Positions 533-59,470 of a DNA stretch of 64,000 bases are shown piece after piece (positions within the stretch are counted from its first letter, which is position 1; the number at the start of each line of letters is the position of its first letter). Location of the stretch: contig CM074816.1 in the NCBI GenBank assembly GCA_037447605.1, positions 883,873-947,872 of the forward strand, written 5' to 3'. The translations under genes were made by a program, and so were the position numbers. The DNA comes from Zygnema circumcarinatum SAG 698-1b (lineage: Eukaryota > Plantae > Zygnematophyceae). The notes beneath the pieces were generated by a model, which made no database searches, was not told the origin of the DNA, and worked only from the letters and a program-made list of their open reading frames with translations.

Positions 533-3090
533 ATGCCACGTGGCGCTACCTCGTGGCCGGACCTGCCCGCCCTCCTACAGACTCGCCACGTGGCGGACCG
601 CGCTGCCACGTATGCACGCCTCCCTCTCGCGCGCGTCTCCTTCCACGATGTCCACGTGGCGGCACTGGTTGAAAGGCTGCCAGCTGGCAGCTCCCCGCAC
701 TTTCTGGACGAGCTAGAGCTCAGCCATGGCGGTGAGGGGAGGGAGAAAGGAGAGGGGGAGAGGGAGGGGGAGGGGGAGGGGGAGGAAGGTGGACCTCGAG
801 GAGGAGGTTCTATGGAGGAGTGCGATTCCGTTGTGTTCGAGGCTGCGGAGGAGGTGCGTTACTTTTTTTTTCGGTTGCTTTAGGGTTGGGAAACAGCCAG
901 CATTTGGCATTTGGAAGTTCTCGGATCAAGATTTTAGGATTTCTAGAGGTTGTAGGGTTTGAGGGGGCAGGGACTCAGGGTTTGCACGATGCTATTGTCC
1001 CAGTTTTCTGGTACCTTTGGAGGGATCCGTCAAATTGTGATTCAGTCTAGTTGGTCATAGCGATGGTTACAACTTTGCATATAGTAATAAGCATTTCTAA
1101 TGTAGTAGGTCGACCTACAATGACAACAATATTCCATGTTCACGCAAAATTGAATTATGGAAGTCCCTTTGATGCTGGCAAATGAAACTTGAGTCTCTTC
1201 TACAGTTGGGAAACTTATCGATCTTTTTAAGTATCATTGCACGTGCAGCCAATGCGCGATATATCCATATTGAATATTGTTTTTTCCTTCTGCCTCCCTT
1301 CTTTTCATCTCAGCTTCTTTCTGGATTGGGCAGGCAGAGCGCGTAAAGCTTATAGCCCTTTCTCTCCGTGCCCGAGCAGAAATGTTTGATGCTGCCCTAA
1401 GCACAGCCACCTCGAAATCTGATCCGAGGGAGGCAAAGTTCAGCCATACACAGATCAGCGGGCACGACAAAATTTTCGGATGCGAATTTTGCCTGCCCGA
1501 ACTCCTAAGCATGCTGCCTGTGTTGGCTGGTCGCTTCCCTTCTGAGTTCACTCCAGGTCTGAACTCAAACCTCTTTACTCTGCCCGTCTTTCCCTTGCTA
1601 AGTTTTGTTCCATTTTATTCTATTACTTAAGGTCTTTCTGACTTCATTGGGTGTGGGCTCTGCATGCAGAACGACTGGTAAAGGGCCTCCTCCTTGCGCC
1701 ACATGGCGCCATCCTATTGGTCGCCACCCTGCTACAAATTAGGGTTTTGCGAAGCCCCTCCATCTCTCTCCTTGCCGCCATATCGGAGGCCCTTCTCCTA
1801 CACCCCTTCCCAAGGGTAGCTCCGCAGCCCACCCTAACCAGTGGTGTGGCGACACCTGGCACTGTTGCAGGGCCCGTGCGGCCGCCACATCATCAAGGGA
1901 GCACCTATCCGGTCTTGCCAGGTGGCAGCCAGGGAGCAGCCCACGTGGGCCCCACTACAGCACTGGGACAACAGCATATGCCAACCTCCGGAGGGGGAGG
2001 AGAGAGTGCAAATTCTCTGTTAGTAGGGAAAATTCGTAATCGTTTGAAAGACGATGTGGTGACGATCCTTGTAAGGCTCTGCCAGGTGGCACCCTCAGAA
2101 GCTGCCACGTGTCGGGCTGCCTTGCAGTCAGCTCAAACTCTCCCAGATTTGGTCCTCCATTTGACCTCAGAATTCTTCCACGATGAACTCGAATTCCTGT
2201 CGGCGGCAACGGTGGGTTCGCTTCCGTTGAACGGAATCCGACAGGGGTTGGCAGTGCATATAGCCGCCAATCAGACAAGTGGTAGTGGTAGTACTGAAGG
2301 AGGAGGTAGTCTCCCTCCGTTGGTAGCTGGAGAAGGTGGTGGAGATAAACCTTTGCAGTCTCCAGCCGTCCGATTCAGGGCAGCTCTCACAGCGGACGCG
2401 CAAAAGTCAATTTCTGAGAGTGGATGGAGTGCCCGGACACACTCCCACCTACGCCTGTTCTGTGTGTTAGTTAGAATGGGTCCGTTACAACCTTCCATCT
2501 CCGAGGTGCGTTTCCGTGTATATCCAATAGCTTGCGAAAATCTTAACTTTTCTTTCTACCTCTCTCTCCTCCTCCCTGTCTCACCTTTTCTCCCCACCAC
2601 CTTTCTTATATTTCCTTTTGCGAATTGTATCTTATTTTTCTACCATTGACTGTCGAACTGCAGGTGGAGATGTGGTTGGCTGCTTTAGCCGGCCGAGTGA
2701 AGGAACCACCTTCAGCGACCGGAGGAAACATGGAGAAATCCCACCATCCAAGGAGGTCTATATGTGCAAATACTTTATGTTTAGGAATCGCATTTCTATG
2801 CATTGTTCCGGGGCTAGGGGCTCTCTCTCTGCGCTCTCTCTACCATGCAGCGATTGGAGAGCTGCTCGGTCCCACGCTGCGACATCTGGCAGCTGCGGGA
2901 GGCAGTGCAGAGGGAGACGAGAGCAGTGTGAGAGGAGAGGGAGAGGGAGAGGGAGAGAAAGCGGGAGAGACGGAGGAGAGCGTGATGGTGGTATGGACCG
3001 CAGTACAGCTTATGCTCAAGCGATTCGCAGAAATTGCAGAGGTGAGGAGACCTCCAGTCCTGAAGCTTTTTACGCTCATGTGATGTATCC

Positions 3091-3146
<56 letters not shown>

Positions 3147-6100
3147 ATATGCATGTGCTTTCACATCCCTTTGACTACGACTGGCAGTCCGTCCTCGTCC
3201 TCCCCCTGCCGGACCCTTCATTCCTTTTGAGTCCATAGCCGCTTCAGAGCTCGTAGGGATTCCGGAAGTCTTAGACTAGGATTAGATTATGATTTCATTT
3301 TATAATTTTTAGAGTACTGTACTCTGAGCGATCTTACAGTTTTGGCCGTACAGGTCGTACGGTCTGCCTTGGGTGTCCACGTCACCATCAGCAACGCGGC
3401 GATGCGCGATCTGGTGGACGCCGCGGCGACACCTGGCGGGCCCCTTGCCAGCCTGGCACTCGTGGTCCGGGCGGCAGGGGCTCTCAGGCCCCGCCACCTC
3501 ATCCATGGCTGCATGTGGGACACGTGGCAAACTCTGAGGGAGGAGAGAGAGTATCGAGAGGACATATAGGGCAAACACATCGTCTAAAAGTCGTCAAACC
3601 GTGGAACCTTTGTTTTAAAGTTGTCATAAAAAAGTGATGTAACACAGCAAAGCCATCAGGGGGGGATGCATCTGGTCGCTTTTTGGGGCGTGTTTTTGGG
3701 GTCTGAAGAGGGGGGGAAGTGTGTGGTCGAGTTGTGCAGGAGTGCAGTGCATGGAGTTGTCAATCGGCCAATCCCGTATCGCCATCTGGACTGCTTGCAG
3801 CAGCTGTTCCTGGGGGGACACGTGTCACGCTACTGTGAGAACATAACGGGAGCGGTTGCGCACTGCATAGAACACGCAACCCTGCCGATTCATCCGGTAA
3901 AACTGGAAAATTTTCTAAAAACCCTCAAACCTTGGAGAATCCTGAATTTCTGCTATAACCCTAAATTTTTTCAGACCTGCCAGGGAAAGCCCTCCTCTTG
4001 CATCATCCCTTTGCACTTCCTATAGTGAGAGAGAGAGAGAGTGAAAGAGAGAGAGAGAGGGAGAGAGAGCGAGAGAGAGAAAGAGAGAGAGGGGGGGGGA
4101 GAGTGAGAGTGAGAGAGAGAGAGAGAGAGATTGATTTTTGCATTTTTGGTGCAAATGTAGGCCCTGCCGCCCTTCATCCAAGCATATGCAGAAGCTTCTT
4201 CCGCACAGGCAGGAAGGCCACGTGGCAGTATCACCTCGGCCCAGCAGGCAACAGGAGACTCCCACTCTCTCCCTCCCTCCACTCTCATCTCTCTCCTCCG
4301 TCCCGCCTGCCGAGCCCTTCTCCTTTCTCACCCACTAGACGACAAAGACCTGGCAAAAGCGGCCTTGGCAACTCACTACATGCTATGTCGAGAACAGAAC
4401 GGTAGAAGCCATACCCATGGCTATGTGCCCCATGACATGGCAATGGCTGGATGGGGGGGAGAGGGAGAGGGAGGGGGAGGAGGAGGGAGGGAGTGGGGAC
4501 TGCTCATGGAGAGCGTTCCTTGGCGCCAGCTGGCAGCACGGATGGATGACAGCTGGCAGGCCCTCGAGCCTCTGCTGCCGCTGGTAAGTAGAGGGAGATG
4601 GTGGGAGGGTAAAGGGCTGCTGCAGTTTTTATTTTTTGACTCTTCTCCGCACTTATCATTAATGTTAAAACCTGTAGGGCTTATCTAAGCATTATATCGG
4701 CGATTGAAGCGAGAGGGTTATTATCTATTTGTTCTTTTTCCGGAGAATTAAGTTTTATATTTTATCAAATAAGAATAGGGATTAAACATGTCTCGTAGGT
4801 GCGAATTAACAGAAAGCCAAAAACCCAGAAATTATGACAAGAAAACATTTATAAGGGAGAAAACAAAGAATCAAAATGCCTTTTCATTGTGTTAAGACTT
4901 GCGGTTGTTATTGTTTATTCCAGTGGCAGGCTATGGCGGATGCTCTTCTTCCTCACCACTTTCCTCGAAATATATTAAGTACGAGCCATTTGGATGGGGC
5001 TTGGCTGCCCCATGAGGTCACAGTGACGTCTGCAGACCCAAGTTTAAGGGGTCTGATTGGCTGGAATGAGCCGCCAGGTGGCACTCAGAGATTCGCGGGA
5101 GAAGTTGACCTATGTTTATCCAAAAAAGCAATTTCGGAACAGCTAGGAGTAGCCTTACTGAGGCCCCTGCAGGCCCTTTCTCTGCTTGACACGTGGCAGC
5201 ATTTGGGAGTGTGGGAGAAGGACGATGTGGGAGTGAAAATCGAAGGTTTGAGAAAAGTGAAAGTGGAGGAGATATATCGGCATTCTGATTCTTTTGACTT
5301 CTCTTATTACAGTAGTGAGTGGGAAAGGGAGGCAGCTGTGGTAGAGAGCTTGGCTCCTTTGCTTTTGGATCGGAGATGTGAACGGAGGCTGCAGGAGGGG
5401 TTTAAGGTTTGGTGGGAGAGGCTGCCTCCCATGGGACACGTGGCACTCACTCCAGTGCTCCTGGGTTCCATAAAGGCAGGGGAGGAGATGAGGGAGGAGG
5501 AGAGGAGTTTCAGTGAGAGAGGAAATCAGAGTCCAGTTCCTTTAAGTTTAAGGGCTCATGCCTTGAGAAGGAAGGTGGTAGCTGAGGAGGGTGAGAGAAA
5601 ATGGGCAGGTGAGGAGGAGGAGGAGAGGAGGGTGGTTTCGAAGCGGGTGAAATTGGAGTCAGGAGAGAAGAGAGAGAAGAGAGAGAGGAGGGAAAGAACA
5701 AGCGATCTCTCCCTGTGTGAGGGGATGCCTGACCCTCTCTCTCTCCTTGCGGTACATCCGAGAGCCCTGCGAGTAGGGCCACTCCTGGAGGTCCTCATTG
5801 GCCAGCTCCGCCGTCAGAGGGAGGCGCACTCCCGCCTCGCTTTCTTCTTAACCTCTACCTCACCAGACGGAGCGGGAGGGGGAGGGGGGGTGGGAGTGGG
5901 AGTGGGAGTGGGAGGAGCTGCGGGANNNNNNNNNNGGGAGGGGGATGGGGGCTGAGTTGGGAGGAAGTTTCATCAGCCCTAACGCTTCAAGACAGGTGAG
6001 AGCTGGGGAGAGGCTACTGCGCTATGATGTAGGGTTCAGAGCGAGTTTGTAGTTTGTAGTTTGTAGTTTGCAGTTTGCAGTTTGTAGTTGTGCTGCCTCG

Positions 6101-18619: not shown

Positions 18620-21268
18620 TCAAGCACAGCCGGAAATGAGATTGACCGACCGCTCGCCGACCTCCCGCAGGGTGAGAGGGAGAGCAGGCGATGAGGGGAG
18701 GGAGACGGAGGGAGCAGCGCCGCTGTTGTAGACCTTCCGCCACGTGTCCACCAACTCCTTCACAACCGGCAGGTCCATGTGCTCTGCGGCAGGGTTGAAC
18801 CGCCATGGCTTGGAGCCCTGCAGGTTCTTGCCTCTCAGTTTCAGAGTTTTGGAGTGGAGTTTTACCTGTCGTTCTGTTGTAGGGTGCCTAGAGGCTTTCT
18901 AAAAAGGGGTGCAAAAAGATTAGGGCAACGCAAGGGCTGTGCTCTTACCGCTGCACAGTAGTGGATGACTTTCAAGTCGGAGAGGTCGATGTTTTCAGGA
19001 TGGCGCCACAGCATGGCCAGCACGAGGTTGTACTCCTGCGGGAGCGGCTTGAACGTCTTCTCAAAGAACTTGTTAAGGAAATCCTGCAAATACCAAAATT
19101 ACTCAGCAAAAGAATAGATTAAGTAGTACATTTATCGAAGCAGACGAGCTCAGATACTGTACAGATTAACTCAATGACTACATTCCTCGACTGCAAGAAA
19201 CGCAAGCCGTTATTTGCGCATGGCCTGCTACTCAGTACAGTAATAATTCTCCGCGAAACCTATTCGTACCTGCTCTGCGAAAGGAGTGGGCGGCTCCGTC
19301 TCCAGCAGCCGCAGCATCTCCGCAAAAACCTTTTTGCTCGGCTCAAAGACGAACATTCCCGCGTTGAAGTACAGGGGGGGATGGGCCTCCTTCAGCGGCC
19401 ACTTCGCCCTGTGCGGGCCATGCTGCTGGCAGTATCCGACCTTGTACTGGGGACTGCAGGGGGGCACCCAAACATTCACAACGAGTCAGCTCTCCAGGAG
19501 GCAGGTGAATATCACTCCTTTCATCTCGTCAATCTGATAAACCAAGCACCTATCCTGCATACTCTTCTTCTCTCCCAACAATTGCACCGTAATTCGTGTA
19601 GAGAGAGGAGTTGAAGTGATGGTTCATAGGCTGCAAGTCGGTGGAAAAGCTTCCTTCCCTGCCTCACCTGAATGACCAGGTCGGCTCGCAGAAGCAGTCC
19701 ATCACCGCCCGAAACGAGCCCTTTGCCTGCTGCAAGAGATTGTCGATGTTTTGAACAACAAGCATGTCCGCATCCAGATACACCATTCGGGCAAACTCTT
19801 CAAACTGCACGAAAAGACGCCGAAGTAGATTAAGTAGGATTCAGGTCCGAGATGTTTGCAAAGAGAAAAGAATTCACATCGGAAGTCTGGTTAGTTTCCT
19901 CGTCTTAGCTTAGCTTCTGAAAAAACTCAATTGTACCTTCATTTTCGAATCGCAGCAGCCCAGGAATGAAATAGATGCAGTTTTCGACATTTGAACAGCA
20001 GTAAAGCAAATAACATCTTCACCTGGAAGGCGGGCAATTATATACTATTCTCTGCTAACAGCAATTTTTATGTCCATAAGGAACAGACAACATCCGACGT
20101 TTACCTCCCAAATCCGGAGCTTAGTGTAGTTCTTCGCGTAGTACGCCATGGCGAACTCGACCCCGTGGCCTTCGGGAGGAAGCAGCGGCTCGATCTCGCG
20201 GACGAGGCAGCCATGGCTTCGCAGCAGCGCTCTGTGGTCCTGCGGGACATCGCTCGTCACTGCAGCGATGGAAGGGAGACAGACAGACAGGAACACTCAA
20301 GAGTAGTCAGAAATGCATGCATGCATGCATCCATGCATGCATGGAACTGGCGTTTGGAATGCGCTCAGTCTTTCACAATAACTGAAATTATCATGCTATG
20401 ACCAACATGCAATCCATGCGAAGATGCCCAGTTGTACTGATCGAAGAAATTGTCTCCCCGGACCTCTGGCAAAAGTAAGAGAGACAGAGAAAGAGGGGGA
20501 GGGGGGGGGGGAGGGGGGGGAAGATGGGAGAGGGAGGAAGGAGGAGAGGACACGAGAGAGAAATAGAGACGCGTTCATGCCCGCACAGCTGTCTAGAGCA
20601 GACCAGTCAAATTGATGAAGTCGAATCGTTACCGGAGCTTGCAGTGCTCTATGCATGTGAGAGCAAAGCATAACCACCGCCTACATCGGCCACATCATCA
20701 TCCGATCTCTGCAACACAAATCATCCTCTTCACCAGCCTGCTGCGGACCTGTGGACGGAAATCATAAGCTGCTTCCTGCTAGCTGCATGCGGCATCAGAC
20801 TCTGCTTACTTTATGCATGATTGGCTTAACTTGGCTGGTACGAAATACTAAAGATGAAACCGGGCCAAAAAAGGGCGTCAAGGCATTCCGACATGCGGTA
20901 AGAGCAGAAACATCTATCGAGACCAATGTGGTAGAGAGAAAAACCAAACCCTAAAGCAGCATCATTTTTCAAATCAAAGATGACGCATGCATCTGTTACT
21001 GTTAATTAGCAAGTGGCCCTATATTCCAAATTTCTTTGCTTCCCTTTCCAGGCATTGTGACGAATGTCAGCCAGGAATGTCGGAAATATAGCTGAATCAA
21101 AATGATTTTTTTTTTGACTGAAATATCGTTAAATGAAATCTGGAGAATACCTGCAGCCACAAGAGGGTGCACGCTCCCAACCGCCTTCAGACTCTTTGCG
21201 AGAGCGACGGCCCCCTTTACATAGTCTCCGTCGCCGGTCAAAAACGTCACGTACGCGTATCGAGACAT
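18620..21268 (-). CDS. GolS: Galactinol synthase (GT8), 6 exons
   Basis: Spliced protein: AYVTFLTGDGDYVKG, NYTKLRIWEF, MVYLDADM, AVMDCFCEPTWSFSPQYKVGYCQQ, LYFNAGMFVFEP, PPTPFAEQDFLN, YNLVLAMLWRHPEN, VIHYCAAGSKPWRF. These are GolS signature motifs, and the exon phases I checked are consistent. Confidence 0.93.
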
Positions 21269-22769
21269 GAACCTCTCGGTGCCGAACTGAAGCTCCCTCC
21301 CTCGACCTCTAAAAAATTGGTCTTTCCCTCAATTAAAAAAATGCTTCTAACATTTGTGAGAGAGCTGCAGGACGAGCGCGAGCCTTTCAGAAAGCCGAGA
21401 GGTGCAGCTCTAGTTAAATATGGGGAAGGAGGGGCAGCGGGCAGCACTGAAATGTTTTACGGGCACGTTGGAAAGGGACCGACAAGGAGAAAAATGGTCG
21501 GGCAGGCACAAAAATGCTGACATGGCCGATCCTGAGTGGCTTCTGGTGAACGGGCAGGTCGAAAAGATCGATCGTTGGTTGGAACCGACGGAAGATCTGG
21601 AAGGTTCGGAAAGGCTGAAGGCGCACCAAGCCACGAATCTTGCCGTATGATTCTGGGGAAGGAGAAATGTTTTCTTTTTGTTTATTAGCCGTCCGATTGA
21701 ATCTCTGATGCATCGGACGGTGCGGGTACCAGTTCGGGCAGAAAGGAAAAAAACAGGTCAAGCCAATCTGCGTCCTGGACAACCACGTCAGCGGACCAAA
21801 AGTCGGCCAGGGTGGATCTGGAAAGAACTGCATGAACTGGATTGCCACGTGGCAGACAGGCACGAAAAGGCGCCGGGTTTTTTGGAGAGCCGCCAGGCAG
21901 GATGCGCCACGTGGCAGTTTTCTCGCGTCAAGGTCGAGGCGGCCGCGGCAAGCATTCTTGTGCTGCCCCCAGAGGCGCGATTGGCTGGGCAGCGGCTGCC
22001 CGCTGAAAATTCTTTTTATAGCGGAGGAACACGTGACGGACGGTCGGTCTCTCGTTGGAAGCAAACAATCATGTGCATGTTAACGTGGACGACCGCAAGC
22101 TGATTGGTCATGACGCGCCGCGTGGCACATATGCATAGCGACACGTCAGTGAGCATGGACTGAAACTGCGAATACGTTATGCTGCAGCGCTCTATGAGAA
22201 CGCGGCCAGTTCTACCGGCGACCGAACTGTAGCAAAGGAACGAACGGGTGGCCACAAATCCGTCACCACCCGACGGAGCTGGACATGGAGGAACTCTCAA
22301 GTTGTTGTTCAACAACAAAGCCATCGTATGCTATCATGGCCCACTTTCATCGCCCAAACAAATGAGCTTTCCATTGCTCCAGGGAACTGAACATGTTCAG
22401 CCGCACAAGAACGGTTCATTGGACACTGCATGTGGACGCCGTCCCGTTCAAGCAAGGGTCCAGCCTCGTCACCAAAGCCCAGACCATGATCATCCATCGT
22501 ACATTCCATGGATGGGCATGGCATGACACGTGATGACATGACATGCATGCATGTGCAGCCAATCACCACATGATAAATCACCTGACATGAACTGAAGGTT
22601 CGCAGTTGCACTTCCGAACTATTCGGTTACAACACAACGCAACTGTCAACTGCCAGTGACAAAGAAACAAGCTCTCTAGACGCACACAAAAAAGGACGAG
22701 GTTTGCTATTTGAGGGTTTTGGGGGTTAGGGTTTTAGGGGCCCTCTCCAGGGAAGACAGGCGGCGGAGC

Positions 22770-22855
22770 CCCCCGAGGTTCCGCCGCCCTTTTTTTCAGA
22801 CCGCGCTTCGCCCCTTTAGAGGGCTTCCCAGCGCAGCCGTCACGCAGCCTCGCCC
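22770..22855 (-). promoter_or_regulatory. SECIS element (GUGA core, type II) in the GPX 3' UTR
   Basis: Minus strand GUGAC-GGCUGCGCU-GGGAA-GCCCU-CUAAA-GGGGC-GA-AGCGCGGUC-UGAA (22843-22795). It has a 9-bp helix II (7 Watson-Crick plus 2 G-U pairs), a GA/GA quartet, an unpaired AA and an apical mini-stem. It lies 3' of every candidate GPX stop. Confidence 0.82.
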
Positions 22856-22880
22856 TGAAGATTTATACCCCATTTGTACC

Positions 22881-25800
22881 CTAATCGCCCCACTTCCTCA
22901 AAACGCATTCAAGAAAATTGACAAGAACGAACTCACTATAGCCCATAAACATCATCACCACCATCATCATCGACGACGAGGAGGAATGGTTAACTTTTGG
23001 TGACTGAAATGAAAAGCGCTTAAGGAGCTCCCAAGTAAACTCGCTCCTTTGCAGGAAGGGACCTGCACAGGGCAGGGGGCGGCCGCACAGGGCAGTCAGA
23101 ACCGCCCTGCAAAAGGTCCATTGTTTAAAATGAAGATTAAGATTTTTACCATTAAAAAATATTACTATTAGGGAGGGACATTTTTGAAGTGCGCACATTC
23201 CATTGAGAGCCGCCAGCACATCTTTTTCGAAGTTGAGAGGGTCTGCCGCCGGCTTATAGCGGCGAATAGGATTGCCCTCGCGGTCGATGAGGAACTGCAG
23301 CAAGCGAGGGAGGGAGGGAGAGAGGGAGGGAGGGAGAGGGAGGGAGGGAGGGAGGGAGAGAGGGAGAGGGAGGGAGGGAGGAAGCGGGTCAGCGCACTGG
23401 CTTGACTCACAGGGCTTAGTCGAGTCATCATTTTTACCCCCCCCCCAAAAAAGGCGGACTAGTCCTTAGTCAAACTAATCCAACTAAGACTTAGGGTATT
23501 TAGGGTGAGGAAGTTGACAGGAAGTAAAGCTCAAACTAACCGTGCTGGGTTTCACTTGATACTGTAAAGTGATCGAAATAGCTTCGAAGGATAAGACTTA
23601 GCGAAGAAAAAAAAAACGGTTTTGTGCCCTTACCTTTACATAGTTCCACTGCGTGGTTCCGCGAAACCGGTTTTTGAAGCAATATTTTTTTTTGCCAAAT
23701 ATGTCACATGTCACATTCACCAGCAATCCAAATCCCATACAATAAGCACAAGATACAATATTATCTGATTTTTGAAATTTAATCACTTTCAGAAGCAATC
23801 GATCATTTGAAGAATTTTGGTTCTAGGGTCTGTCCCATTTTTAGGGTTTCCAGGCTCACCTCTATCTCCCCGGGCTGCCTCTTTTTGAGAAATCCGTACA
23901 GAGGATGCATTCCGGGCCCCTTCACTTCCAGCTGCTCCCTCTCCACTCCCTCTCTCTCTCTCACTACACATGCTTCCCTTACATAGAAATACTGGAAAAT
24001 GCAAAGCTGTTTCATTCGTAGGACTTTTATCTTTTAGGGTTTTATGCTTTAGAGGACACCCGAGTTGGGATGTATGGAGAGAGGAAAGAAAAGGTCGAAG
24101 AGGGAGGAGGGGAGGGAGGAAGGATGAGCAAAGGGGAGAGAGAGAAGGGAGGAGAGTGGGAAGGGAGACGCAGAAGAGGGTAGAGAGAGAAGGGAAAGGG
24201 AGGAGTTACCTTATCGAATACTGGGAACTGAAAGAAGTGAGGCCATTCGCACAGAGAGAAACGAACCACATAGAACTGTTAGGAATTCCGGAACCCTAAT
24301 TTTGTGCAGACACCATCTCTTCATGATGAACTTTAGAACATTCTTCCATTTTGAAAACATGAAAGGAATAGATAGGAACGATACGATGCATTGCTGCTAT
24401 CAAAATCATTGAAATTTTAAAAGCAATTTATCTTTTTCGCATGGAGGACACAGGAAGGATTGATTCGATATTCAATATATATGTATCGAAATAATTCGAA
24501 ACAAATAATAATAATTCGATATTGTGAATGCGAAACACATAGACAGTGAGGCAAACTGTCTGACCTCAAATCCAAACTTGTAGTACGCATATTCCCGCTC
24601 TTCATCGCTTGACCCCGGAGCCTGCCCCCCAAACTGAAACCCTAATTCTGCAAATTGTGAGAAACCTTAAAAGATTCAAGTTCCTTTAAAATTTCATGCC
24701 CCTCCTTTTCGAATACAGTCCTACAATATTTAACAATTTGTGTATTGTCCAGCGAAGCTTAATCATCCATTCAGACCCCGGGTCTAGGAGGGCAGTCCCT
24801 GCTTGCATGGCTCAAGCAAGTTCAAGTCAAGAAGGTGAGAAGTAGATGATTTTTGAGAGCCTAAAAACCTAAAATATAGATAAAGATTTGAAAGCCTTTG
24901 CTTCTTACCTGGTTGCAGGGGAAGGCAAGCAACGTGAACCCCTGTAACCCATTTTTTACAGATAGAACGAGTAGGAACAATCTTCAGAAAGGGTCTGTAG
25001 AGGAATGCTTTCAAGCCATGAAAATGCTCAAACTTTAACAAACAAAAAAAATGCAGTTGAAACACCACACCATGTGGTAAGACTGTGCAGCATCGACCAA
25101 AGTAAACAAGTGAGACAGGAGAACAGGTTTAACACAACAGCTCAAGAAGGAAGAGAGAGAAGGAAGAGAGAGTGAGAGAGGGAGATGATAGAGGGAGAGA
25201 GAGAGGGAGAGGGAGAGGGAGAGGGCGAGGGAGAGCACGGAATATATGGCTCACCTGGTCTCGATACTTATTCCACAAGTACCGCAGACCTGCACTCGCC
25301 CACTCTCACATCTCAGAAAGGACAGAAAGAAACAGCGATGCAGGCCGAGATCTCAGTATGTCGCTGTGATTTTAAAATGCAAAATTGACCAAATAATGGA
25401 AAAAAACCGGTCGTAGCCTGCTGCTTCCTTGCTTCAAGTACATGCGATTATCTATAGAGTTGCATTATTCAGAGAGCAAGAAAGGACCTGGATAGTTCTG
25501 CACAACAAAGCAGCACAAGAGAGATATGATAAGGGCCAGGAATACGACCGAAAGAACAAGCACGGAATCTCATATTACATCTATATCCATCTGAGGAGCA
25601 ATAAGATAGTTTCCATTCCTATAACCCTTTACTGCAGGCTAGGGATCAAGAGCCCTGCATGTTTATAATGAGCAGATTGCATTCCCTCTCACCACGTTCT
25701 GCAGAGGTCAGGCAGAAGCGATGTTCATCACAACGGACACCTGTCAAGGCACGCATTTGAAAACAGGGAAATAGAACGTTACTGAAAATTCTTAGCCCAA

Positions 25801-27434
25801 GTACAAGAAATTTTCCTTAACAGTAACAAACCAGCCTCCTGAGTTAGTACTACGCAGGGAATATCCTGAGAGAAATGGGGATGCAGAGTAGTGCATAGGA
25901 AGTCTCTTTGGCTTTTAGGGTTCCGGCTTAGGGCTTCGGACTATTGCATGAAAGCAGGCATACCATGTTCTTGTATGGCGAAAGAGGCGCGTCCTCCTCC
26001 TTGTACGTCATGGTGAAGTCATACACCGACTTTACCTCACCACCTTCAGCAACTGAAACGAAAGCAAGACGACAAAGACATCTTAGAAGAACGTACACCT
26101 GGCATTGAATCCAAACTCGCCCTCTACACATGAAATGGAAAGGACGAGAAAAAACAAGCAGGGCAAGTGGCCCATGGTTCCATGTACATACAGAAGTTCT
26201 CAGAAAATAGGCTGCAGTATGCATGTGTGTGGGGTAAAGAGTGAGTGAGAGAGAGTGAGAGACAGAGACGGAGAGAGGGGGGGAGAGAGAGAGGGGGGAG
26301 GGGGAGGGGGGGAACGAGGGAAAGTGAGGGAGGGGGAGGGAGAGAGAGAGGGAGCGAGGGAGCGAGGGAGAGACGGAGAGGGGGAGAGAGAGAGAGAGAC
26401 GAAGAAAGAGGGAGAGAGGACGAGCATGAGAGCGGGAAGAGAGAGGGAGGGAGGCAGAGGGGGAGCGGGATAGATGGACAGGGACAGGGAGAATGAGAGG
26501 GGAAGAGAAAGAGAGACAGAGTGAGAGATGCACATACCAGTCGTTCCTTTCATGCGGCCACATACCTTGGGGAAGAAGCAGAGGGGAGAAAATAGAAATT
26601 CCGGTGGCTCCTGCTGCCAAAAGAGCGTCCCTTCTTTGCAAGCCCTTCTCCAAAGGCTCTCCGTCCGGGCCCAGTAGAGAGGCTCCCTTGGAGACGGACG
26701 CGCCTCTTGTATCATGTTTGGAGACTTTCGAAGAAGCTGCAGTAACCCTTGCAGCTGCTCCGCAGCCATGAATAGGGATGGAGAGCCTGGCTGGCTTCAA
26801 ATTACGGACTGCAAAACGAAATTACATAAAATTTTACAATTAAAAAATAATAGCGAAGGAAAGGAAAACGAAGCGGACGTCACTATTGGGGGTGATATTC
26901 ACGAATGTTGAGTGCAGGTGAAGTGAAAACATAGTTACATGATATCATACACGTGAGTGAATGTATAGTTGTGTGAGTGGTGATGCGTTTCCATATGAGA
27001 TCGTCATGTTATGCATGCGCAAGGAATCTTAAACCTGTGCTATACACACGTACATTTTCGTGTATCCTGTTTAAAAAATGGAACTCTTTTCATGTAGAAA
27101 CAGACAGACTTTAAGACATTTCCGCCGCCATTCACATTGCATAAGACTACGCTATTATTTTTCCTGCAAAATAAAACTATCAGTAATACAAGTGCAGAAT
27201 TTTCCTGGTTCAGACCACGAACTCGGCGCTTCAGTGCGTGGTTAAGCCTTCTGACACTAAAAGCAGCTGAAAAGGAGAGAGAGAGAGGAAAGAGAGAGAG
27301 AGAAGAGAGAGAGAAAGGAAAGAGAGAGAGAGAAGAGTGAGAGATAAAGGGAGAGAGAAAGAGACGTCACCATTGAGCTCGATGGCAGGAGCGAGCACTG
27401 CAGCGGGCGGGCGCCCCCCGCAGAGGGAAGCCAT
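22881..27434 (-). CDS. GPX: Selenocysteine glutathione peroxidase with plastid transit and twin-arginine signal (about 13 exons)
   Basis: Exons: 27434-27371, possibly about 27271-27218, about 26811-26566, 26052-25964, 25740-25693, 25497-25488, 25289-25255, 24941-24909, about 24634-24566, 24227-24210, 23931-23860, 23648-23634, 23294 onward. Protein: ..QRRDALLAAG..VAEGGEVKSVYDF..VMNIASA(U)[56 protein letters not shown]. The in-frame TGA at 25710-25708 occupies the catalytic position. The last exon and stop are uncertain. Confidence 0.92.
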
Positions 27435-28282
27435 GGCTACCGCGCTACTGCTCTCCTCCCTCCCTCCCTCCCGGAGAGGAAGGCAGAGGTCCATCGTCCG
27501 TACACCATTCCGTACGGTTCTCCCTGAATCCAGTCGTCTACCGTACGACACGGCATGTTAGTCGTGTTTGCATACGTCAGGTCAGTGAGTACACGTGGCG
27601 TACGTATGACCGTCAATCTGCGGATCGAACGGTCCCCGCGGCCTCCCTCAAACGCTTGCACGATTTCGGAGCCGTTCGCTTAATTCGTGGTTTCCGAAAG
27701 GGACACGAATGGAGCGAGTAGCAAAGCAGAGGGGAATGAATGAATGAATGCCCATCCTGATGTTGTCCATGTACATTTGATGGCCTCACCATCGTGAGAT
27801 CAATAGGGAGGGTCAGACATTAACCGTGGCCATACTAAATTCCCAAATTTAGTATACTAAAAGTCAACGTTTCTTGTACGAATTCTGGGTCGGGATCCGC
27901 GGCTTCGCCGGACACAGCCGTACCGAAATGCGTACGTACAGCCAGGGGTCCTCATATTTTCCACACTGGTTTTGGCCAATAATATGAGGCGAAAATATTG
28001 ATTTTGCATATATAAGGTTCGTGTTACCAATAGACGGGCGGTATTATGTTAGAGTTTATGTTGGACCGTACGTATCGTACCGTAATATATAGCGTATCGT
28101 ACTGTATCGGCTACTACAGCTCGTACGGCTAGTACGGATAGTGCCGTATCGGGGCGTTTCGTGTCGTACCATATCGTATCGTATCGTATCGTATCGTATT
28201 GAATCCAAGAAGAAGGGTAGAAGAGCGAGCGCCTCTTACGGCGGCACGTGCGGGGAGATTAGGTGAGTTTTGCGTAAGCCTG

Positions 28283-59192: not shown

Positions 59193-59470
59193 GATCGGAC
59201 CATTAGACAAACCAGTCGACTGGTTGGCAACCAGTGGTTGCGGACCGAAACAACCATTCGACTGGTTGCCAACCAGTGGCTCAGGACCGAAACAACCATT
59301 CGACTGGTTTGGAACCAGTGGATGCCACTGGTTGGCAACCATTCGACTGGTTTGGAACCAGTGGATGCCACTGGTTGGCAACCAGTCGACTGGTTGCGAA
59401 CCAGTGGCGCAGGACTGAAACAACCATTCGACTGGTTCGGAACCAGTGATCCAATGGTTGGCAACCATTG
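59193..59470. repeat. Array of nested palindromes (AACCAGTCGACTGGTT, GGTTGGCAACC, AACCAGTGGATGCCACTGGTT)
   Basis: Seen directly. It begins with GATCGGACCAT, which resembles the 43363 terminus. Related motifs occur at about 37005-37100. Confidence 0.85.

Follow-up and report, generated by a model that had tools for sequence, protein, structure and literature searches.

Eukaryotic SECIS elements of the type II form, as represented by the Rfam family SECIS_1 (RF00031) and by the SECISearch3 consensus, reside in 3' UTRs. They combine a core of tandem G.A pairs, whose published consensus is UGAN/KGAW (PMC3753652), with a helix II of ~9-11 bp, an unpaired AA on the 5' side and a mini-stem above this AA. 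In Chlamydomonas reinhardtii and two Ostreococcus species, most SECIS elements follow a GUGA_AA pattern, with a G before the quartet and an apical AA; this pattern is also known from sponges (PMC3473315). Streptophyte algae are reported to retain the complete Sec machinery, with a few selenoproteins in each (PMC6627142, PMC7539508). Because selenoproteins and Sec machinery are already documented in these algae, a SECIS element in a streptophyte alga is in itself expected, and a possible branched architecture is the only part of the present case that could go beyond the routine.

We analyzed a stretch of 64,000 nucleotides from the green alga Zygnema circumcarinatum, a close relative of land plants (the window; all positions are counted from its first letter). 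Its minus strand carries a multi-exon glutathione peroxidase (GPX) gene with an in-frame UGA and, in the 3' UTR, a hairpin that shares the type II features listed above (Table 1). We consider the element at 22843-22796 to be, very probably, the functional SECIS of this GPX. The same interpretation had been given in the initial annotation, and it gains support from the spliced 3' UTR in which the element resides, from a UGA at the catalytic position, from a core that agrees with the consensus and from a homologous element in each of ten orthologues.

The upper part of the element is built as the initial annotation had described it. Its GUGAC and UGAA core strands, its 9-bp helix pairing GGCUGCGCU with AGCGCGGUC, its unpaired AA 13 nt from the core and its apical mini-stem of GCCCU with GGGGC were all recovered at the positions given in Table 1. 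Two of the nine contiguous pairs of helix II are G-U, and an unpaired GA separates the GGGGC strand of the mini-stem from the 3' strand of helix II. Both helices are present in the centroid fold (111 nt) and in the unconstrained MFE structure (126-nt context). The core quartet, UGAC (22842-22839) with UGAA (22798-22795), fits UGAN/KGAW. Helix II length and AA spacing fall within the usual limits for SECIS elements (9 pairs; 13 nt), and the presence of a mini-stem (helix III) above the AA places the element with type II.

The term "GUGA-type" in the initial annotation is right insofar as a G precedes the UGA, but it does not denote a special class: such elements lie inside the known consensus and are reported to prevail in some green algae (PMC3473315). 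The element shares with these the G before the quartet and the apical AA. It differs in that the G is exceptional within its own gene family, since all ten GPX orthologues collected here have A before the core UGA and the window provides the only exception. Because AUGA is found in 10/10 orthologues, the G in the window looks like a single tolerated substitution and not like a rule of the lineage.

Table 1. Positions of the parts of the GPX gene and of its putative SECIS element in the window
Feature	Position	Strand	Basis or remark
In-frame UGA, putative Sec codon	25708-25710	minus	exon 25740-25693, context NIASA-U-PLQNV; translation and frame
Micro-exon, 10 nt	25497-25488	minus	AG/GT borders, spliced RNA contigs
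Micro-exon, 18 nt	24227-24210	minus	AG/GT borders, spliced RNA contigs
Micro-exon, 15 nt, WNYVK	23648-23634	minus	AG/GT borders, spliced RNA contigs
Last intron, 134 nt, GT..AG	23063-23196	minus	joint 23060/23195 (cut +2) in 4/4 runs, depth 92-175
True stop TAA, after ...LNGMSLPAKERVYLGAP	23020-23022	minus	frame across spliced exons; C-terminal motif conserved in P0001-P0006
3' UTR, at least ~620-680 nt	22341-23019	minus	contigs with last coding exons
Long-range helix I (predicted), 5' strand: UCUUCAGGG, bulged C, GAGGC	22847-22861	minus	constrained and unconstrained MFE, 126-134 nt context
Putative SECIS, upper part, type II form	22796-22843	minus	sequence, folds, Rfam SECIS_1, clade model, covariation
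5' core GUGA	22843-22840	minus	followed by C at 22839
Helix II, 5' strand GGCUGCGCU	22838-22830	minus	partner is AGCGCGGUC
Unpaired GGGAA above helix II	AA at 22826-22825	minus	AA 13 nt after core UGA
Mini-stem GCCCU/GGGGC, 5 bp, loop CUAAA	22824-22820 / 22814-22810	minus	folds
Helix II, 3' strand AGCGCGGUC	22807-22799	minus	partner is GGCUGCGCU
3' core U-GA-A	22798-22795	minus	sequence
Predicted side hairpin, 10 bp + 3 bp	22758-22789	minus	folds; directly 3' of A-rich linker 22795-22790
Alternative short-range helix I, 3' strand GCGG-AA-CCUCG	22774-22784	minus	pairs with 22852-22844; mutually exclusive with side hairpin
Long-range helix I (predicted), 3' strand: GUCUUCCCUGGAGA	22744-22757	minus	MFE

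GPX motifs are present in the translations of short minus-strand exons upstream of the element. From these translations we read a U in NIASAUPLQ, a Q in FPCNQFGGQ and a W-N in WNYVK, which we take, by comparison with GPX motifs, to be the putative catalytic Sec, Gln, Trp and Asn. The exon structure was derived from contigs of four public RNA runs from three studies, which were placed on 22000-27600. Every contig joint is GT..AG on the minus strand with a depth of ~90-275, and unspliced contig pieces have a depth of ~2-22 only. Because they are spliced, the contigs derive from RNA. They correct the initial annotation in one respect: the frame had been read without splicing from 23294, and the contigs instead remove the last intron and lead to the TAA listed in Table 1.

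Contigs that carry the last two coding exons run unbroken from 23060 to 22341 (X1), 22363 (X3) and 22402 (X5), and in the remaining run (X2) to beyond 22000. Because such contigs pass through the element without interruption, it lies in an exon and is carried by the mature mRNA. Its start is separated from the TAA stop by 168 nt and from the in-frame UGA by 576 nt, so the claim that it lies 3' of the stop of a UGA-containing GPX is borne out by spliced contigs in all four runs. Among the circumstances that the initial annotation had named as speaking against it are that the segment is intronic and that polyadenylation occurs upstream of 22855. The element is, however, within the last exon of spliced contigs, and these contigs, which do not mark poly(A) sites, reach 22402 or lower in 4/4 runs. 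The SECIS is thus inside the 3' UTR of a spliced and expressed multi-exon GPX mRNA, although shorter isoforms that do not include it may exist.

To collect related mRNAs, the last coding exon was used as a query; it was supplied as ORF 23294-22885 with the intron left in place, and scoring was confined to residues 1-40. This query retrieved P0001, a 131-residue ORF on RNA contigs, and a search with P0001 produced further ORFs, 131-157 residues in length, which start just after the Sec position. Pfam searches with single exons of the window yielded nothing, as the exons are too short. The orthologue P0001 matches the Pfam family PF00255 (GSHPx) at 6.8e-18, and a tblastn comparison of P0001 with the window is collinear, with 55-100% identity, across all exons downstream of the UGA apart from the 10-nt micro-exon. 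In this comparison, residues 118-131 map to 23064-23023, which is the C-terminal exon past the last intron. We assign the gene to the putative Sec forms of glutathione peroxidase with a GSHPx domain.

The set of relatives consists of ten distinct mRNA contigs (L001-L013), encoding the proteins P0001-P0007, P0018, P0021 and P0039. All ten have an in-frame TGA at the same position, in the context N-I/V-A-S-A/E-U-PLQN, and GPX sequence is conserved over 131-135 codons past this UGA. An element of the form AUGA-C/U ... AAA ... U/C-GA is found 50-170 nt after the stop in 10/10 of these mRNAs, and in each the A run follows the core UGA at a distance of 12-14 nt. In most of them, sequences and folds judged by eye show a hairpin above this run. 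The window therefore resembles the seleno-GPX mRNAs of related algae in its Sec codon context, in the distance of its SECIS from the stop, in the spacing of AA(A) and in its mini-stem, and it shares the tail ...KER-x-YLGAP with the closer ones. In contrast, almost none of the sequence is shared in helix II, in helix I or in the side hairpin, and the differences are compensated.

The relatives were used to build a covariance model of the clade. A MAFFT alignment of all ten relatives (A1) was dropped, as it placed three distant sequences out of structural register. The model (R1) was instead based on an alignment (A2) that omits the window and contains the 3' UTRs of seven GPX orthologues; 11 bp were assigned to helix II and 3 bp to the mini-stem. 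On the minus strand, R1 matches 22849-22792 with 31.0 bits and an E-value of ~5e-6 (75 kb, consisting of the window and the loci of the relatives, both strands), and it produces no other match in the window up to E = 10. When filters were turned off on 20000-28000, the element was again found with 31 bits. Searched against the three most distant contigs, L011-L013, R1 recovered none of the three, with L011 giving a 10-bit partial match; thus, the model is limited to the clade.

Covariation was assessed in an alignment fitted to the structure of the model (A3). Standard pairs occupy 82% of its cells, compared with 39-49% when partners are slid by 1-3 columns; the fitting somewhat inflates these pair counts, and the slid-partner controls use the same alignment. 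Changes on both sides are seen in 11/14 pairs of helix II and the mini-stem, and none of 500 shuffles reaches the observed covariation score. For the three modelled mini-stem pairs taken separately, 82% are paired across the relatives, and two of the three show double changes. Judged by these alignments, helix II and the mini-stem appear to be conserved with compensatory changes in orthologous selenoprotein mRNAs.

Below the core, the element appears to depart from SECIS_1. Helix I has three candidate pairings and is not predicted to be the simple 5-bp stem of that model, and on the 3' side an A6 linker precedes a predicted 32-nt hairpin. The 3' flank, which is the region of this side hairpin, has an MFE of -24.8 with z = -2.4. 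The initial annotation proposed that helix I forms with GCGGC or CCUCG. Both partners exist, and they can pair jointly, as CGAGGCUGC (22852-22844) with GCGG-AA-CCUCG (22784-22774) gives a duplex of -11.6 kcal/mol. However, folding models favor a long-range helix I over this pairing by 12-14 kcal/mol, and the GCGGC and CCUCG segments would then lie within the predicted side hairpin (22789-22758), as one arm and its apical stem.

When a 134-nt context is folded freely with the core held unpaired, the MFE structure (-67.1 kcal/mol) is a three-way junction composed of a 14-bp helix I (22861-22847 / 22757-22744, with one bulged C), the SECIS arm and the side hairpin. Pair probabilities of the long-range helix are 0.69-1.0. 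Folds in which the short-range helix I is forced reach -53.4 and -55.1 kcal/mol. On these models, the element of the window is more likely to be branched than unbranched. A similar prediction was obtained for L004, which folds into the same branched topology with unrelated letters; L004 appears to be the closest relative, as read by eye from the peptide sequence. By a fixed criterion, 7/10 sequences are predicted to be branched, compared with an expectation of 3.1 under shuffling of both flanks (P ~0.01). When the 5' flank is shuffled alone, the window gives p = 0.02, and the signal is weak for most relatives.

A competing reading, and a real possibility although it falls short of being probable, is that the SECIS is genuine but unbranched, with a short-range helix I formed by 22852-22844 and 22784-22774 (CGAGGCUGC with GCGG-AA-CCUCG, or GCUGC with GCGGC). 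In this reading, the downstream GC-rich inverted repeat would remain unformed or would be a separate element. Such a structure has the canonical SECIS architecture, and its duplex is of respectable stability. The best short-range duplex of L001 has the same layout, in which helix I abuts AUGA and is followed by an 11-nt 3' loop, and our reading of the two sequences reveals a C-G to G-C swap between the L001 duplex and GCUGC/GCGGC of the window. L013 is also predicted to be unbranched. Against this reading stand the energetic cost of forcing the short-range helix, the long-range pairs that lie near probability 1 in the ensemble, the topology shared with L004 and the excess of branched predictions among the relatives.

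A wider reading is that the functional element is a three-way junction, in which the SECIS arm would be enclosed together with the side hairpin by a long helix I (22861-22847 / 22757-22744), and that this is a conserved, lineage-specific architecture of zygnematophyte-like algae. We put this wider reading forward tentatively and consider it less likely than not. If the element is such a junction, it may alternate with a fold based on the short-range helix I, the 3' strand of which would be sequestered in the side hairpin, and an alternation of this kind would constitute a structural switch on Sec insertion. In the relatives L004 (943-985) and L001 (1155-1200), the short-range helix I partner overlaps or adjoins the predicted side hairpin, and thus the choice between two exclusive folds recurs there. 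L004 also has UCUUG twice, before and after the hairpin. Two further comparisons did not bear on the matter: a search for helix I by MFE, in which the inner part was blocked, was dominated by local hairpins and gave no information, and the near-identical contig pairs L007/L008 and L001/L002 contain no variation informative for the branched model. Among the papers searched, none describes a branched or three-way-junction eukaryotic SECIS element, and the search returned only the "extra stem" of archaeal VhuD.

Whichever form helix I takes, the hairpin could in principle resemble a SECIS by chance within a GC-rich UTR. In that case, the UGA would either terminate translation, producing a truncated inactive peptide or a target of NMD, or be recoded by some other element. 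Folding energy lends itself to this view, as it is not better than that of dinucleotide shuffles (z = -0.64), and in so GC-rich a stretch stability alone is therefore no argument for a SECIS. A descriptor requiring RUGA, a helix II with a minimum of 8 contiguous pairs, AA 10-14 nt further on and a 3' GA matches only the element at 22843-22796 in 128 kb (both strands of the window), at a chance rate of 0.13 matches per 128 kb under a first-order Markov null; however, the descriptor was written after the candidate was seen and is thus biased toward it. Even with looser settings, the descriptor detected no rival SECIS in the 3' UTR.

The Rfam results can be read in the same direction. At gathering thresholds no SECIS is reported in the window. 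SECIS_1 does align end to end with 22851-22783 on the minus strand, spanning model positions 1-64 of 64, with E = 0.033 in a 1-kb search, but the score of 24.7 bits lies below the gathering score of 35, and the element has G where the model has A before UGA. A whole-window run for E-values lost this match, and because stricter filters on long input are what drop it, that run is unusable as a null for 24.7 bits. SECIS_1 also found nothing at E <= 1 in the contigs of one relative, L001-L003. Given the sub-threshold score in the window and the lack of matches in that relative, SECIS_1 is insensitive in this algal clade.

We nevertheless judge a chance look-alike to be very improbable. A clade model that was built without the window detects the element and nothing else there, ten orthologues retain the UGA together with the 131-135 GPX codons that follow it, a homologous element in every one of them shows compensatory changes, and the 3' UTR offers no other candidate. 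Least likely of all is that a second segment downstream, 22156-22104 on the minus strand, is the functional SECIS or an additional one: it is the runner-up of the filters-off R1 scan (13.2 bits, E = 0.045 in 16 kb) and the X2 contig extends past it, but it scores 18 bits lower than the element at 22843-22796, lies beyond the contig ends in 3/4 runs (22341, 22363, 22402), is not found by the descriptor scan and, being downstream of most transcript contig ends, probably matches by chance.

If the element at 22843-22796 acts as SECIS elements are established to act in eukaryotes, the tandem sheared G.A/A.G pairs of its GUGA/UGA core would create a kink-turn-like motif that is bound by SECIS-binding protein 2 (SBP2). 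SBP2 would in turn recruit eEFSec with Sec-tRNA(Sec) to ribosomes arriving at the UGA, which lies 576 nt upstream of the element, and this codon would then be read as selenocysteine at the peroxidase active site, with no termination. Both the binding of SBP2 and actual Sec insertion at the GPX UGA are put forward here by analogy.

With a putative SECIS in place, the case for this GPX as a true selenoprotein of the alga is complete in its parts, comprising a UGA, expression and a cis element. The gene model is also corrected by an extra intron, the true stop and three micro-exons. Moreover, the eleven diverged orthologous SECIS elements that have now been collected raise a testable question, which is whether these algal SECIS elements are branched.

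Automatic annotation breaks selenoprotein genes of this kind, as exemplified by P0013 from Mesotaenium endlicherianum (eukprot jgi/Mesen1/9191). In this protein, ...YKNK joins GFTLLAFP directly, and FPVFDK and WNYVK are absent. It appears that the public gene model skips the Sec-codon stretch together with two short motifs further on, an error typical of the annotation of selenoprotein genes. P0013 is also among the proteins that extend past the usual GSHPx end with a C-terminal tail of the form K/Q-E/K/Q-R/S-x-Y/F-L-G-A-P/A. This tail is found in P0001-P0006, P0013, P0021, P0027, P0038, P0039 and the window, where it has its own last coding exon at 23062-23023.

Several repeats were observed in and around the gene. 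Some contigs join 27472 to ~23940 (23944/23937), with low depth in X2 and X5 and a depth of 43 in X3. Because 27472 and ~23940 are both CT-rich low-complexity tracts, these joins are probably assembly chimeras at repeats. Elsewhere in the window, Rfam microRNA families give sub-threshold matches on both strands at 3074-3160 and 59313-59405 (mir-297 scores 43.6 bits against a gathering score of 90), and our guess is that they represent repeats of a low-complexity or palindromic kind. Several introns of the gene are filled with long (GGGA/CTCC)n tracts of low complexity, for example at 23390-23300 and 26530-26250. Short units resembling the plant-type telomere repeat, CCCTAAA on the minus strand, occur at 22745-22715, ~24040, ~25930 and other sites, in the UTR and in introns.
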